A stretch of DNA of 64,000 nucleotides from Geosiphon pyriformis uo1 (Eukaryota; Fungi; Glomeromycota). The DNA lies in contig JAAOMT010000029.1 of NCBI GenBank assembly GCA_016748015.1, positions 174,896 through 238,895 of the forward strand. The letters are read 5' to 3'. Within the stretch, counting starts at the first letter, position 1; every line of letters starts with the position of its first letter. Shown piece after piece: positions 12,312 through 22,913 of the stretch. The position numbers were made by a program, and so were the translations under genes. The notes beneath the pieces were generated by a model that was not told the DNA's origin, searched no databases, and saw only the letters and a program-made list of their open reading frames with translations.

Positions 12312-14352
12312 TTAAGAAAGCTCTAGAGATTCATCTTCTTCCAACGGCTTCACTTCACTTGTTGTATCAATATGAATTACAGCATCAAATTGCTTGGATG
12401 TCTTGGCTCGAAAATAATGAGACAAATATTCTGTATCCGGTGCATAAATAACCCCGATAGCGCGTTGAAGCAAATAAGATGAATCGGCCAATTCATTTAT
12501 GAGATCTGTGGAAGTTGGTGTTTTTACGCTTGTTTCACTTGAAATACGCGTGAATAACAAGAGGAAATTTGGTTCATTGCTTTTTACGGCTACAGTATGG
12601 AACGCGTTTTCAACTGATTGTGGTAGGGAGGGGTTGACTAATAAACAAGTCATAAATAAGAAATGGTTTTAAAATAAATTTCTAAATTCAGGTTTGCTAA
12701 AAATCTCTTACCTCTTTTAACCTCTCTTTCTCCATCCCAATGAGATGCAGCTGTGACTGTAATTAGGAAAAAGAAATAAAATTTTAGCTCAAAAACACAG
12801 ACATAACAATATTAAAGCTTTTTCCTGCCACCACTAGCCTGTGCCAGTATGGGTAGTAAATCCAATGTTGTAGGTACGTCCATATCCAAATCTTTCGCGT
12901 GAAAGTTGTCCAATATTGATTTCACCGCGTCCCCAACCTTGCTCCGTCTGAGAGGCGTCACCAACATGACTATTAGGGATAATGATTGATAACCAATCTT
13001 TCCTTTGGTTTAATTGCAGCATATAAATCACCTTCGCTTGAATACCTGTTGTGGGCCTGAAAGTAAAAACAAGATCATTGGCTCTATTTCTTTATTTTAA
13101 AACAAATTATTGAAAGAAAAATAAGGCTAACCCAAATTACGCTTTTAAATTCCTTTCCGCCTCTTCTTCCTTCTAATCTTTTAATCAGCCTCTCTAAAGC
13201 ATTCATCATGTGAGTATCTCGTCGATTCCAACTCTCAGGGCCAACTGCCATAGCATGTCGATAATAGTCCTCGGCATCCTTTACAACAAGAGCGTTCATT
13301 TCGGCATTAAATAGTCCATCGACTTCTTCTGAATCTCTATTATCCTGAGGATATTCAGTAGTTTTTTTCATAATGCTTTTCAACACTTGAATCACTTCAT
13401 CTTCACAGGTATCACTAATTTGGAAATAAGTCGCCAAAGTGTAATTCTCAGTGGACCTATTAAAATGATCAAAGCAACTATAACTATTATCAAGTAGATA
13501 AAGTTATTAGATGGGCTTGGAGTAATAAACAAATTAATATTTTAATATTACTTTAGGCGGGCTTGCTTTGCAGCTTTTGGATCAATCTTGTCGAGATATT
13601 GAATTATGTTGTTTATCGAACCGAACAAGGAATAAATATCTAGTCCATAGAAGCCAACCTATGTTTGAAAATATAATATATGAATTGTGGCGTAAGAGTA
13701 TCTGAAAAAATGAAAAGAAAAAAAAATTACTTTCTCAGAAAAAGGTTTCGTTTTCTCACTCTGGCTCTGGGATTTTGCTTTAGCTTCAATTTGATCGTTA
13801 TAATTTCTCAACCATTCCACAAAATTTACGACTTCTTGATTTGCCCACATCCATTTAGGAAAGCGTTTAAAATCACTCAATGCTTCTTTGGCATTTCTGG
13901 ATTCGTTCGTTTTGTAATTTTGAACATAGCGATTAACTTTGTAGGCGTCAGGCCAATCAGCTTCACAAGCTACAACCCTGCAGAGGAAAAATTAAATAAT
14001 TAGAAAGAAAAAATGATTCAGCGAAGATTCAGCTTACGTAAAACCCTTTTCTTTGATGAGTCTTTGAGTGATTAAAATTCGTTCATGATAAAACTCTTTT
14101 GTCCCATGTGTAGCCTCACCAATCAAAACGGCTCGTGCTGAGCCTACACCAATTATAAGTAGTGAAAATTTTGGTCCAAATGCAATGCAAAATTATATTT
14201 AAATAGCTTTATAAAATAAACACCGTAGTTAAATACTTACCAATACTTTCCAAGAGGGTATCGTAATCCTTCTTTGGATTATTCAATGAAAGTGGTATAA
14301 TATTTCGCCTGATAAGGTCATAGTCGACTGCAGTCTTGCGAGCAGGGCCCAT
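12312..14352 (-). CDS. erythromycin esterase (EreA/EreB-like) family hydrolase, 9 exons
   Basis: The spliced product carries the family motifs [93 protein letters not shown] and QFDAVIHID. It includes an 11-nt microexon (13046-13056) and one GC-donor intron (12757-12838). Confidence 0.93.
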
Positions 14353-16599
14353 GGTAGTAATCCCTTTTGTAAGTAATAAGAGAGCGAAAGGGATAATTTT
14401 AGAAATTTGTTCCTTGATGAAAAACATTTTTATTTGATATATTAAAGAAAACCTTTGATTTTTATCATTTTTGGTCATAATTTTTACAGTGTCTTTTTTT
14501 TCGTGATAAATTACTTCATAGTTATGTAAGCTTACTGAGTCTCCAAATTGAGCTATCTTCAACATCAAAAACTAATATCAGCCTTTTGCCATTCAAATTT
14601 GGCATTGAATTAATGTCTCAATTTAGTCAAATCTTTAGTTAATGAGCTTTGAACAGCTGTTTGAGTTAGTAAATTTAGTATTAGTGACGTAAAATATATG
14701 AAAGTTTGTTTTTGCGCGAAATTATTTTGAAATGTGATTCTTGATTTTTATGGTTTGACAGGTTATAATCTGACCTAAATTCAGATTATAAGTTTTTTAT
14801 CATTCAGTTCAATTCTAAGAAAAATCGCTAGTAAAACATAGCCGAATGTGATAAAGCTGGAAACTTTCTACCTGACATTATTGGGAAGAAGTTACAAATT
14901 TTTGTACCTGTTTGACTCTATCACGATAAAATGTTTCAATATAATTACATTTACTGACAAATAAAGATATATTGAAACTAACTAGATGTTTGAATGACCT
15001 CTTGAAGCTTCTCCATATAAACGATTAAAATGTTGAATTATCTTATTCACAAAAAAATCTTAATTTTTTAACTATGAATATGATTCTTCGTTTAGTTTCC
15101 AATGAAAGTTAATATAATGAGCCTGATTTATTTCAAAATAAAGATCTTTCATGTTTACTAACAGATATACAACTGTTCTGTCCTGTGATATACAAAGATC
15201 TTTTTGGTTTTCTTTTTAGGAAGTAATATTTAGCACATCAGATACTTAACTTTGGAATTAAATAATACACCTCTCTGAAAAAAAAGTTTTGTTAAATGGA
15301 ATATCATAAAAAAAAATTAATTCTTAGTAAAACTTGAAAGATTTTTATTATAAAAAATTGAAGCCTTATAATTTCTTTGCTTTATTCAAACCCCAAATTT
15401 TCGATTAACTCTTAAAATGTAATCCGCTATCATTAGTTTAGAGTCAATAGCAATTTTTTCATTAAACCATTTTAACATATTATTCATTTTAATAACATAA
15501 TAATATTAATTTCAATTAATAATATATTAATATTTATTAAATAATGAGTTATGTAATTAAGAAAATTATAAAACATTGAAATTATTTTAGCAAAAAATTA
15601 TTTATTACTTTTAATTGAACCCAAGATTATTAAAAATTTTAATTAAAATATTATATATTTATAAAAATAAAAATTACCAAGTTTAAAACATAAAATTAGA
15701 TTAAATAAAATTAAAATAAATTTATGAAAAATTTTATATTTTAGTTTGTAATTAATATAAATGTTTTTTTCATTATTATTAAATATCAAATAAACAATTG
15801 AAAAACTTAATGAAAAGAAAAAATGAACGAATATTATAATTTTGACAAATTAATATTAAAAATCCAAAGAAAATCAACTTATAAATAAAATTGACATAAG
15901 AGAAAAGTAATTAGACTCAAAATAATTTGTAATTATTACTTAATTATATTTGAACTTTAAAAGTAATATTTGAAATTTTATCAAAAATTTGACTGTATAA
16001 TAATAAATATTGAAAGTTAGTAAATAATATTATATTAAAAAGTTTTATTACAAATAGTTTATCTAAGGCAAAAAAATATCAAACCTATTTCTTGTAAATA
16101 ATTTAAATTTTTTAAATTTATAAATTTTGCAAGTTGTGATATATTATAAAATTTTTCAAATTAAAATTATGAATTCCAATCTTTTAATAACAACTTTTTC
16201 AAATATGCAAAAATTTAGGAATCCTTTCTCTTTTAAGATTAAAATTATATGAATTTAAGAAATTTATTTTTCCTTTTCAATATATTCCAAATTGATTTGC
16301 TAATATTTTATTTAAAAAACATAAGTTGTCTTTTGAGCCTGTGATCAATTTATCAGATGAAATTTTTCTTTTAATATTTAAAATAATAAGTTGTTCTATT
16401 ATGTTGTTATAATTATCAAAATAAATGGTTTAAATTGTGAATTAAATAAATTTTTCCAACTATTTAAATAAACGCCTTTTTCAAATAAATAATTTTACGG
16501 ATATTAAATTTTTCGTTTATCCGAAGTTTTATTGATCTTCAAATTGTGACCATGCAAAAAGATGATTCCACCAATTTATGTTGTAATTTACTAACCGAT

Positions 16600-21246: not shown

Positions 21247-22913
21247 CTATTTCCCTAACTGTCTAACTTGCTCGGAATGAGCTTTCAAAATTTCCAAAAT
21301 TTCCTTATCAGTGTCGTAAACACCGTACCATCCCTGAGCTAATAATGATACAAGTTTCTTGAGAGGTGTCCAAACATTCAAAGTGGTTATATTTGGATCA
21401 GAGATTTTAAAAAGTACTTACGCTCATGAGGAGGATCTCCAAGCCATTGTGGAACAGGGTCAGTTGGTCTTGCGATACCAGAATAAGCCCAAAAGGCCTG
21501 GCCCGCAAAGGCATTTTGCTTTTCGAGTTCAAAAACTTTATCACATAGGCTTTTATAAAATTTGTTTTTATTAGTGATGGGCGCCGCTGGATCATACTTT
21601 GAAATACCAGTCCATCCATCCCTGGCCAGTCCTATAAAAAAATCCTTATTTAATGACTATTAGATAAGCCAGAAACCTTGGATCGTATTTTATGAGACAT
21701 ACCATATTCAGCCAGATACACAGGTTTCTTTAAAATCTTGGTTGACCAGTCACTCGCATCTTGCAAAAACTGAATCATAAAATTTTTTGCCCGATCGAAA
21801 TTTTCTTTGCTTGAATCATCCGAGTTGTAGTACCCCCAATTTTCAACCCAAACATGGGCGCTCGCAAAATCTTGATAGAAATACAAACTAGATAAATATG
21901 ATAATTCGAAAGTTTGAAGAGAATTCTTCAAGTACAAACCAATATTATGACTTTTATGCATTGTTATAAACCAATCTTTTCCATTCTTCCCTTCAGCACC
22001 AGTGGTCACCAAATGATTTGAATCCAATGATTTAATATAGGCGGCGCTGGAATCGATCCATTCATAGAGTATCGAATGAGCATTGAGACCTTCAATTGCC
22101 TGAGGTTCATTGGCTAATTCCCATGTAAGAATTATTGGATCATCTTTATAAAGTTTGCCATTCACAGTGTTTCGTCGTGTAATGATGGTTCGTACGAGAT
22201 CTCGATAAATGACCTGGCATTTTGGAGCCACTTCTTGATCGCTGTAGAATCGGGCGGCGTAAGCGGTGAGAGCATCAAAATCCTTGCCTTTTGGGTATGG
22301 AATTGGCGTCTTGTTATTTTCTGCCCAATTGACGTATTGAACAAATCCTCCGGACCAGTGCCAATAGTTTGAGAGGGTCTTATAGAGGTTTTAATTAAAT
22401 TTTAAGTTAAAGTCCGAAGCCAATTTTTTACAATTCTGAGTTCATGATAAGGAATTCTACTAGCCACTGTAGCGGTCATGCCGTGTTTTTCGATCTGATC
22501 TAGAGCCCAATCGAGGCCTGTAAGTATCAAATAATCAAAAGTTATATTATTTTTTTGAATTTGTAAATTGGTCGTGAAATATTAATTTGGAATAAAGGTT
22601 TATGCATTCCTTGAAGAACTTTTTCATCATATTCTCCAGGAGAGTTCATCAATGCTGGATACATTCGATACGGTTGACCTTGCGGTCCTTCACTAGCAGC
22701 CATAACCCGAATATTATTCACGCCATATTTTTTCAAGATTGCTAAATCCTCTAATACCCTTGATCGATTTCCACCAATCTCCATCCCAAGATTCATTGCT
22801 TGCCAGTAGTTGGCACCAACAAGAAACAAAGATTTACCATTCTGAACAAAGTTTGTGCCGTTTACTTGAACAAATTGCTCTCTCTCAGCGTTGTTTCGTT
22901 CAAATTTAGACAT
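21247..22913 (-). CDS. glycoside hydrolase family 5 (subfamily 7-like) beta-mannosidase/mannanase, 6 exons
   Basis: Motifs GANYWQAMNLG, NNIRVMAASEGP..QPYRMYP, GLDWALD, TLSNYWHWSGGFVQYV, WELANEP (acid/base Glu), AHVWVENWG, LAEYGLARD (nucleophile Glu), FWAYSG and WLGDPPHEPQGWYGVY. They closely resemble Rhizomucor miehei Man5B and Cellvibrio Man5A as I recall them. Stop TAG at 21249-21247. Confidence 0.93.

Follow-up and report, generated by a model that had tools for sequence, protein, structure and literature searches.

GA-AG and GC-AG introns in neighbouring genes of the fungus Geosiphon pyriformis

Introduction

Few signals in eukaryotic genes are as invariant as the GT dinucleotide of the 5' splice site. 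GC-AG introns make up 1–2% of introns in any fungus, and GA-AG introns a few per ten thousand. To our knowledge, a GA donor is as a rule a "dead-end" site, and such donors are frequent in just a handful of lineages of animals and dinoflagellates. We analyse here four introns of Geosiphon pyriformis that carry A or C in place of T at position +2 of the donor. Two have GA donors and two have GC donors, and they lie in a seven-transmembrane (7TM)/G protein-coupled receptor (GPCR)-like gene, a GH5 exo-beta-1,4-mannosidase-like gene and an erythromycin-esterase-family gene. All are in one 64,000-nucleotide (nt) stretch of DNA with ~29% G+C, referred to throughout as the window, which is positions 174896-238895 of contig C571 in an assembly of 128.3 Mb in 792 contigs.

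Several described systems are close to these introns. GT-AG introns constitute 98.7% of introns in fungi (PMC7072748), and GC-AG introns 0.8–1.9% in curated fungal sets (PMC3577648, PMC11590231). The curated set from Ganoderma lingzhi contains 1.85% GC-AG and 0.038% GA-AG introns (35 of ~92,100; PMC11590231), and GA-AG introns are also listed for Fusarium graminearum (PMC3577648). In Eurytemora affinis and in Oikopleura dioica, GA-AG introns account for at least 3% of the total, the donor is preceded by a conserved AG, and a variant isoform of U1 has been proposed (Frey and Pucker 2020, PMC7072748). A GA-AG intron of the human FGFR genes requires, in the account of Brackenridge et al. (2003) given in PMC7072748, that a canonical GT site lie six nucleotides upstream.

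The two Geosiphon GC-AG introns do not differ in kind from U2-type GC-AG introns. They share the GC and AG ends, a near-consensus remainder of the donor (GCTAGT in both), precise removal, and interchange of GT and GC at the same position, as seen among the GH5 orthologues; the difference is one of local density, 2 in ~34 introns against 0.8–1.9%, in a window that was selected. The GA-AG introns resemble those of Eurytemora and Oikopleura in having GA and AG ends on U2-like introns, A at +3, transcript support and an effect on annotation. However, only one of the two has the preceding AG (a slash marks the exon-intron boundary here and below): the GH5 donor reads aAG/GAA, whereas the 7TM/GPCR-like donor reads aTT/GAA. 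No gene for a variant U1, such as has been proposed for Eurytemora, was found in Geosiphon. The FGFR intron, as cited in PMC7072748, is likewise a single GA donor used efficiently by the major spliceosome, but the six bases upstream of the Geosiphon GA donors (GCAATT and TTCAAG) contain no GT. Finally, the sporadic GA-AG introns of Ganoderma lingzhi and Fusarium graminearum are rare, experimentally confirmed and processed by ordinary spliceosomes. In Geosiphon, by contrast, two occur in adjacent genes and a third in a paralogue, beside GC-AG introns, which is unexpected at the rates seen in those species.

Results

Splice junctions in transcripts

A preliminary description, made from the sequence, had proposed the four non-GT donors, and each hexamer is present at exactly the position proposed: att/GAAAGT at 18580 (+), aag/GAATGC at 22609 (-), gtg/GCTAGT at 22464 (-) and cag/GCTAGT at 12838 (-). 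The introns and genes concerned are as follows, with comparator introns at the end.

18580..18664, + strand: GA-AG intron 2 (85 nt) of the 7TM/GPCR-like gene; donor att/GAAAGTAT, acceptor tgtacAG/aac; X2 contig
22518..22609, - strand: GA-AG intron 1 (92 nt) of the GH5 beta-mannosidase-like gene; donor caag/GAATGCAT; X3 contig
22379..22464, - strand: GC-AG intron 2 (86 nt) of the GH5 gene; donor gtg/GCTAGTAG; X2 and X3 contigs
12757..12838, - strand: GC-AG intron (82 nt) of the erythromycin-esterase-family gene; donor cag/GCTAGTGG; Pfam PF05139 coordinates
18166..20134, + strand: 7TM/GPCR-like gene, 552 codons, 5 exons (18166-18453, 18520-18579, 18665-18807, 18895-19277, 19350-20134)
21247..22913, - strand: GH5 exo-beta-1,4-mannosidase-like gene, 421 amino acids, 6 exons (22913-22610, 22517-22465, 22378-21940, 21870-21703, 21631-21422, 21338-21247)
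21339..21421, - strand: comparator GT-AG intron, agc/GTAAGTAC; transcript-verified
18454-18519, 18808-18894 and 19278-19349: other transcript-verified GT-AG introns, in the span of the 7TM/GPCR-like gene
21632-21702, 21871-21939, 23423-23490 and 23682-23757: other transcript-verified GT-AG introns

Four public runs of Geosiphon pyriformis were found, and their contigs were compared with positions 18000-23900 of the window (5,901 letters), a span that covers the first three introns listed and excludes 12757-12838. Run X1 is genomic; its depth is even, at ~87, throughout the compared span. Runs X2 and X3, which come from different studies, have zero depth in intergenic bins, and the forms that they contain are all joined and intron-less; TruSeq adaptor ends are also present in X3. 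These features indicate that both are assemblies of cDNA or transcripts. Junction coordinates were obtained by applying the stated cut shifts to the contig joints.

The X2 and X3 contigs contain eleven joints, of which eight are GT-AG, two GA-AG and one GC-AG; thus, three of the 11 transcript-verified introns are non-GT, and contigs from two studies splice all three exactly as the preliminary description had predicted. It put the total at about 34 introns; a GT-only gene finder placed 36 in the window. An X2 contig that spans 18234-19545 of the 7TM/GPCR-like gene with four joints connects 18579 directly to 18665, leaving out an intron with GA and AG ends, with zero positional ambiguity or microhomology. 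An X3 contig that spans 21195-22917 of the GH5 gene with five joints skips 92 nt at 22517/8-22608/9. Three letters of microhomology make the position of this joint ambiguous; 22518-22609, with GA and AG ends, is the sole placement that ends in AG, and no placement begins with GT. In the next intron of the same gene, 22378 is joined to 22465 in both X2 and X3, such that a GC-AG intron is removed in two studies. All transcript joints preserve the reading frame, and those in GH5 reproduce the exon lengths of orthologues.

In-frame canonical alternatives exist at two of these sites, so that sequence alone could not have decided between them. GTATTT at 18584, spliced to an acceptor at 18678, could stand in for the GA donor at 18580, and a GTGGCT lying 3 nt further upstream could stand in for the GC donor at 22464. 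The preliminary description had named use of such alternative GT sites as an opposing outcome; both are contradicted by the transcript contigs.

We considered whether these junctions could be artefacts of an assembly or sequencing error at +2, of spliced RNA that comes only from minor GT alleles in a multinucleate fungus, or of template switching by reverse transcriptase. Contigs hide rare alleles, and the microhomology at the GH5 GA joint would be compatible with template switching. However, the 7TM/GPCR-like GA joint has none, and the joints keep the frame and the orthologue exon lengths. The independent X1 DNA contigs agree with the window at the transcript-verified donors: there are no differences over 19505-23900, and no alternative letter is reported for the donor bases, including 18580-18581. 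Depth of X3 in the bin over the GH5 GA intron corresponds to coverage of exon only, which argues against an unspliced majority allele. A diverged paralogue has the same GA, seen in the assembly as well as in a variant DNA contig (see below). We therefore regard an artefact as highly improbable.

Evolution of the GH5 donors

Exon 3 of the GH5 gene matches the exo-beta-1,4-mannosidase of PDB entry 4lyr (E 2e-35), and a word search identified named mannosidase orthologues in arbuscular-mycorrhizal fungi with ~55% identity. A large protein search returned no close GH5 relative, and Pfam, with exons searched singly, recognised no family. No Geosiphon GH5 protein of 134–425 amino acids is on record, although the product supported by transcripts has 421, an absence that is consistent with a failed gene model without proving one.

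Public orthologue proteins were mapped by script to their own loci in Paraglomus brasilianum, Funneliformis caledonium, Racocetra persica, Acaulospora colombiana, Ambispora leptoticha and Gigaspora rosea. The six-exon plan is common to Geosiphon, Paraglomus brasilianum and Funneliformis caledonium. In all three, exons 2, 4 and 5 are 53, 168 and 210 nt long, and exon 3, of 439 nt in Geosiphon, is 439 or 433 nt in the other two. The donors at the two positions of interest are as follows.

GH5 intron 1 donor: Geosiphon GAATGC; Paraglomus GTAAAA, Funneliformis GTAAGA, Racocetra GTATTC, Acaulospora GTACAA, Ambispora GTAAAT
GH5 intron 2 donor: Geosiphon GCTAGT; Paraglomus GTTTGT, Funneliformis GTAATT, Racocetra GTTAGT, Acaulospora GTAAAA, Ambispora GTAATA

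Since five other genera have GT at both positions, the Geosiphon donors are lineage-specific, single substitutions at +2. As judged from these alignments, the GA and GC donors of GH5 arose by +2 substitution at intron positions that are ancient, and the gene itself is still intact and expressed.

Three orthologue loci have peculiarities of their own. The Gigaspora rosea copy (L029 3001-4164) is intron-less where other copies have introns 1–5. The Ambispora leptoticha copy (L032 4505-5540) contains in-frame stops and frameshifts relative to the orthologues, and has either decayed or comes from a poor single-nucleus assembly. The deposited model of the Acaulospora colombiana gene (L034 3302-3679) skips exon 2 and the start of exon 3, both of which are present with GT donors; this annotation error has nothing to do with non-GT donors.

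Paralogue and deposited model of the 7TM/GPCR-like gene

The 7TM/GPCR-like gene matched no Pfam family, exon by exon, and the designation "GPCR" rests on the reading given in the preliminary description; we use it as a label. A paralogue with 82% DNA identity lies at C348:35565-36209. In a pattern test it reads CCATAGTAATT/GAAAGTATTTCAC, and thus has the same GA donor, which is also present in a variant DNA contig. Because both copies have it, the GA donor predates the duplication and has been kept in each. No DNA-level paralogue of the esterase or GH5 gene was found in the Geosiphon genome.

The deposited model of this gene, G9A89_005684, has 397 amino acids and starts at 18782, on the internal methionine of MYGWNEPE. 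Exons 1 and 2 and the greater part of exon 3 are missing from it, which is to say everything up to and around the GA intron, and we attribute the loss of 155 N-terminal residues to that intron. A gene predictor restricted to GT donors, or to GT and GC donors, builds wrong models of genes with GA donors. The preliminary description had anticipated that standard annotation would misbuild many genes; this is borne out for one gene, the 7TM/GPCR-like gene (397 amino acids against 552 codons).

The X2 contig lacks one T of a run of seven at 18738, in exon 3, which would shift the frame. The X1 DNA agrees with the window at this run, so the missing letter is probably a contig or homopolymer error.

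The erythromycin-esterase-family gene

The fourth intron lies in the 3' part of a gene of the erythromycin-esterase family, for which exon detail is given for that part.

12312..14352, - strand: erythromycin-esterase-family gene (PF05139); exon 13056-12839, mini-exon 12756-12712, GT-AG intron 12711-12638, last exon 12637-12312

The exon upstream of the GC-AG intron (12840-13055, minus strand) matches positions 225-268 of PF05139, with the match ending on the exon's last residue, and the match of the last exon, to positions 284-358, begins on the first residue of that exon. Removal of the GC-AG intron brings in the 45-nt mini-exon 12756-12712, which encodes V plus 14 residues and so accounts for exactly the 15 missing profile positions. 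The GC donor at 12838 that the preliminary description had proposed is thus borne out to the residue by PF05139 coordinates, and the 12757-12838 intron is supported by homology rather than RNA. A GTACCT ~40 nt upstream of 12838 was considered as an alternative donor and rejected; its use would delete residues that match PF05139 up to 268.

A third GCTAGT, cat/GCTAGTGGT, is found in the window at 9133-9199 (-). It could mark the end of an exon, for which no GT-AG alternative exists in frame, and coding support on either side is weak.

Small nuclear RNAs and donor recognition

Like U2-type GC-AG introns, those at 22464/22379 and 12838/12757 begin with GC, at +1/+2, and end in AG. U12-type introns were considered and rejected for all four: the donors GAAAGTAT, GAATGCAT, GCTAGTAG and GCTAGTGG are unlike [AG]TATCCTT, and the 3' parts contain no TCCTTAAC branch site. 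With the canonical U1 5' end, 7, 7, 6 and 7 of 11 positions pair at the four non-GT sites; the verified GTAAGT donor at 21421, the one GT donor scored, also pairs at 7 of 11. Both GC donors have AGT at +4 to +6 and pair with ATACTTACCTG at 6 and 7 of the 11 positions.

Three U1 small nuclear RNA (snRNA) genes in the Geosiphon genome score above the Rfam cut-off, and each begins ATACTTACCTG. The U6 genes have the ACAGAGA box. A pattern search of the whole genome that allowed any base opposite +2 found no U1 gene with a compensating base at that position. Since the 5' end of U1 and the ACAGAGA box of U6 are both canonical, no snRNA change explains the non-GT donors; the preliminary description had named U1, U6 and Prp8 as possible sources of tolerance at +2.

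Two divergent snRNA copies were seen. A weak fourth U1-like copy at C622:680489-680640 (-) scores 49.8 bits, below the cut-off, and has the 5' sequence ATAATTACCTG, in which the change faces donor position +5, not +2. A U6 copy at C645:551457-551553 (+) lacks the GCATGGCCCC stretch. Both are probably pseudogenes.

A variant U1 snRNA with U for A at position 7, as proposed for Eurytemora affinis, could recognise GA donors. One 17-mer, ACACTTTCCTGCCTGGG, at C606:352551-352567 (+), resembles the U1 5' end with such a substitution (A7 to T) and would pair with A at +2. However, neither the U1 covariance model, even at E 10, nor BLAST with a Geosiphon U1 gene detects this 17-mer, and it lacks the invariant ATTGCAC loop motif 35–60 nt downstream. 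We estimate that ~0.4 matches to the pattern are expected by chance in 128 Mb, and we therefore do not count the 17-mer as a variant U1. Moreover, such a variant would leave the GC donors unexplained. A variant U1 is, in our assessment, scarcely credible as the cause.

Frequency in the genome

The window was selected from ~2,300 windows, and a rate of 4 non-GT introns in 34 is therefore surely inflated. The question is whether an ordinary spliceosome, with several non-GT introns coinciding by chance in a window that was flagged for that very reason, could account for these data, or whether the Geosiphon spliceosome is generally relaxed at +2, such that T-to-A and T-to-C changes are near-neutral and GA-AG and GC-AG introns together reach a percent-level share or higher.

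In favour of a chance cluster, curated fungal sets contain GA-AG introns (PMC11590231, PMC3577648), the Geosiphon snRNAs are canonical, and selection among thousands of windows raises the apparent rate. However, we estimate that a GA-AG rate of 0.04% in ~65,000 introns would yield ~25 GA-AG introns per genome, and that two of these would fall in adjacent genes ~0.05–0.1 times per genome. In Geosiphon, one GC-AG intron is in the same gene as a GA-AG intron, another is 10 kb away, and the GA is also present in the paralogue. With the whole genome scanned, such a cluster is unlikely but not negligible, and as an account of all the data we think chance unlikely.

General relaxation is favoured by the transcript-verified set. 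At a non-GT rate of 1.3%, the probability of at least three non-GT introns among 11 is 3e-4, and at a GA rate of 0.05% the probability of at least two GA donors among 11 is ~1e-5. Two independent +2 substitutions occurred in consecutive introns of GH5, and only in Geosiphon; the GA donor was retained in the C348 paralogue; and there is the further, weak GCTAGT candidate at 9133-9199. Set against this, selection of the window biases the rate upward, U1 and U6 are unchanged, and all three introns of HSP90, an independent gene, have GT donors. In addition, a self-trained gene finder (16 donor dinucleotides, equal prior), run on 200 kb of contig C718 (1.0-1.2 Mb), placed GA donors at 3–5 and GC donors at 4–6 of ~220 introns; control dinucleotides were equally frequent, and the result is too noisy to bound the rate. 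This region is full of long terminal repeat (LTR)-retrotransposon open reading frames (ORFs) with in-frame stops, so the gene-finder counts say nothing either way. Counting of ORF pairs was too weak to enrich even GTAAGT. A forced listing of non-GT junctions, which is too noisy to be of use, gave GA and GC candidates such as ttg/GCTAGT at C718 ~1,116,226 and ata/GAAAGT in the FNIP gene, none with Pfam support. General relaxation is thus possible, and we propose it tentatively.

Discussion

We consider it very probable that the four introns are genuine U2-type introns with A or C at +2, in three intact neighbouring genes of Geosiphon, and that they are recognised in the canonical way through the rest of the donor. 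Recognition would proceed through the unchanged remainder, namely G at +1, G at +5 and pairing with U1 at 6–7 of 11 positions, and the usual hand-over to the U6 ACAGAGA box would follow. The catalytic and proofreading steps of the Geosiphon lineage would then have to tolerate A or C at +2, and no compensating snRNA variant would be involved. The preliminary description had suggested a spliceosome tolerant at +2. Precise splicing of GA and GC donors in vivo, lineage-specific in GH5, agrees with that suggestion; a part played by U1 or U6 changes is not supported.

Several points weigh against this interpretation. The types of the runs were assigned by an automatic guess. The RNA evidence consists of assembled contigs rather than raw reads, from which splicing efficiency and intron retention cannot be read, and since contigs drop rare variants, a minor GT allele in some nuclei stays conceivable. 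The intron at 12838 is supported by closure of Pfam coordinates, without RNA evidence. HSP90, the one independent gene modelled by orthologue alignment, has GT donors at all three of its introns. Lastly, we infer, and do not observe, a spliceosomal step that tolerates A or C at +2.

A wider proposition, to which we give less credence, is that Geosiphon, alone among the compared Glomeromycota, has a major spliceosome relaxed for U at +2, with canonical U1 and U6 and a percent-level share of GA-AG and GC-AG introns. If so, a sizeable fraction of deposited Geosiphon gene models would be wrong, and Geosiphon would join Eurytemora and Oikopleura as the first fungal member of their class. It would also offer a tractable natural experiment for finding out which protein component enforces the identity of +2, with Prp8, U1C and the proofreading helicases as candidates. 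Other introns of this kind would damage annotation in the same way, and comparative claims of gene loss could be affected in a lineage that is key to mycorrhizal evolution.

Other observations

ORFs of LTR retrotransposons (RVT_1, rve, aspartyl protease and dUTPase) crowd the region searched with the gene finder, C718:1000001-1200000. Single in-frame stops between adjacent coding fragments in this region comprise 29 TGA, 24 TAG and 16 TAA. Among the host genes there are HSP90, two tandem MatE genes, an NTF2-domain gene, FNIP and a synaptobrevin-like gene. An HSP90 exon is 100% identical to the Geosiphon pyriformis protein G9A89_019904.

The synaptobrevin-like ORF, L016:1102-2115 (+), ends with KKWYNIW followed by TGA, at the point where R-SNAREs have the second W of a WW motif. 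In-frame read-through of this stop into the following 160 nt gives a transmembrane-like stretch and a further stop ~50 codons later. The TGA could be a TGG-to-TGA mutation, a TGA codon read as tryptophan, or part of an unusual intron.

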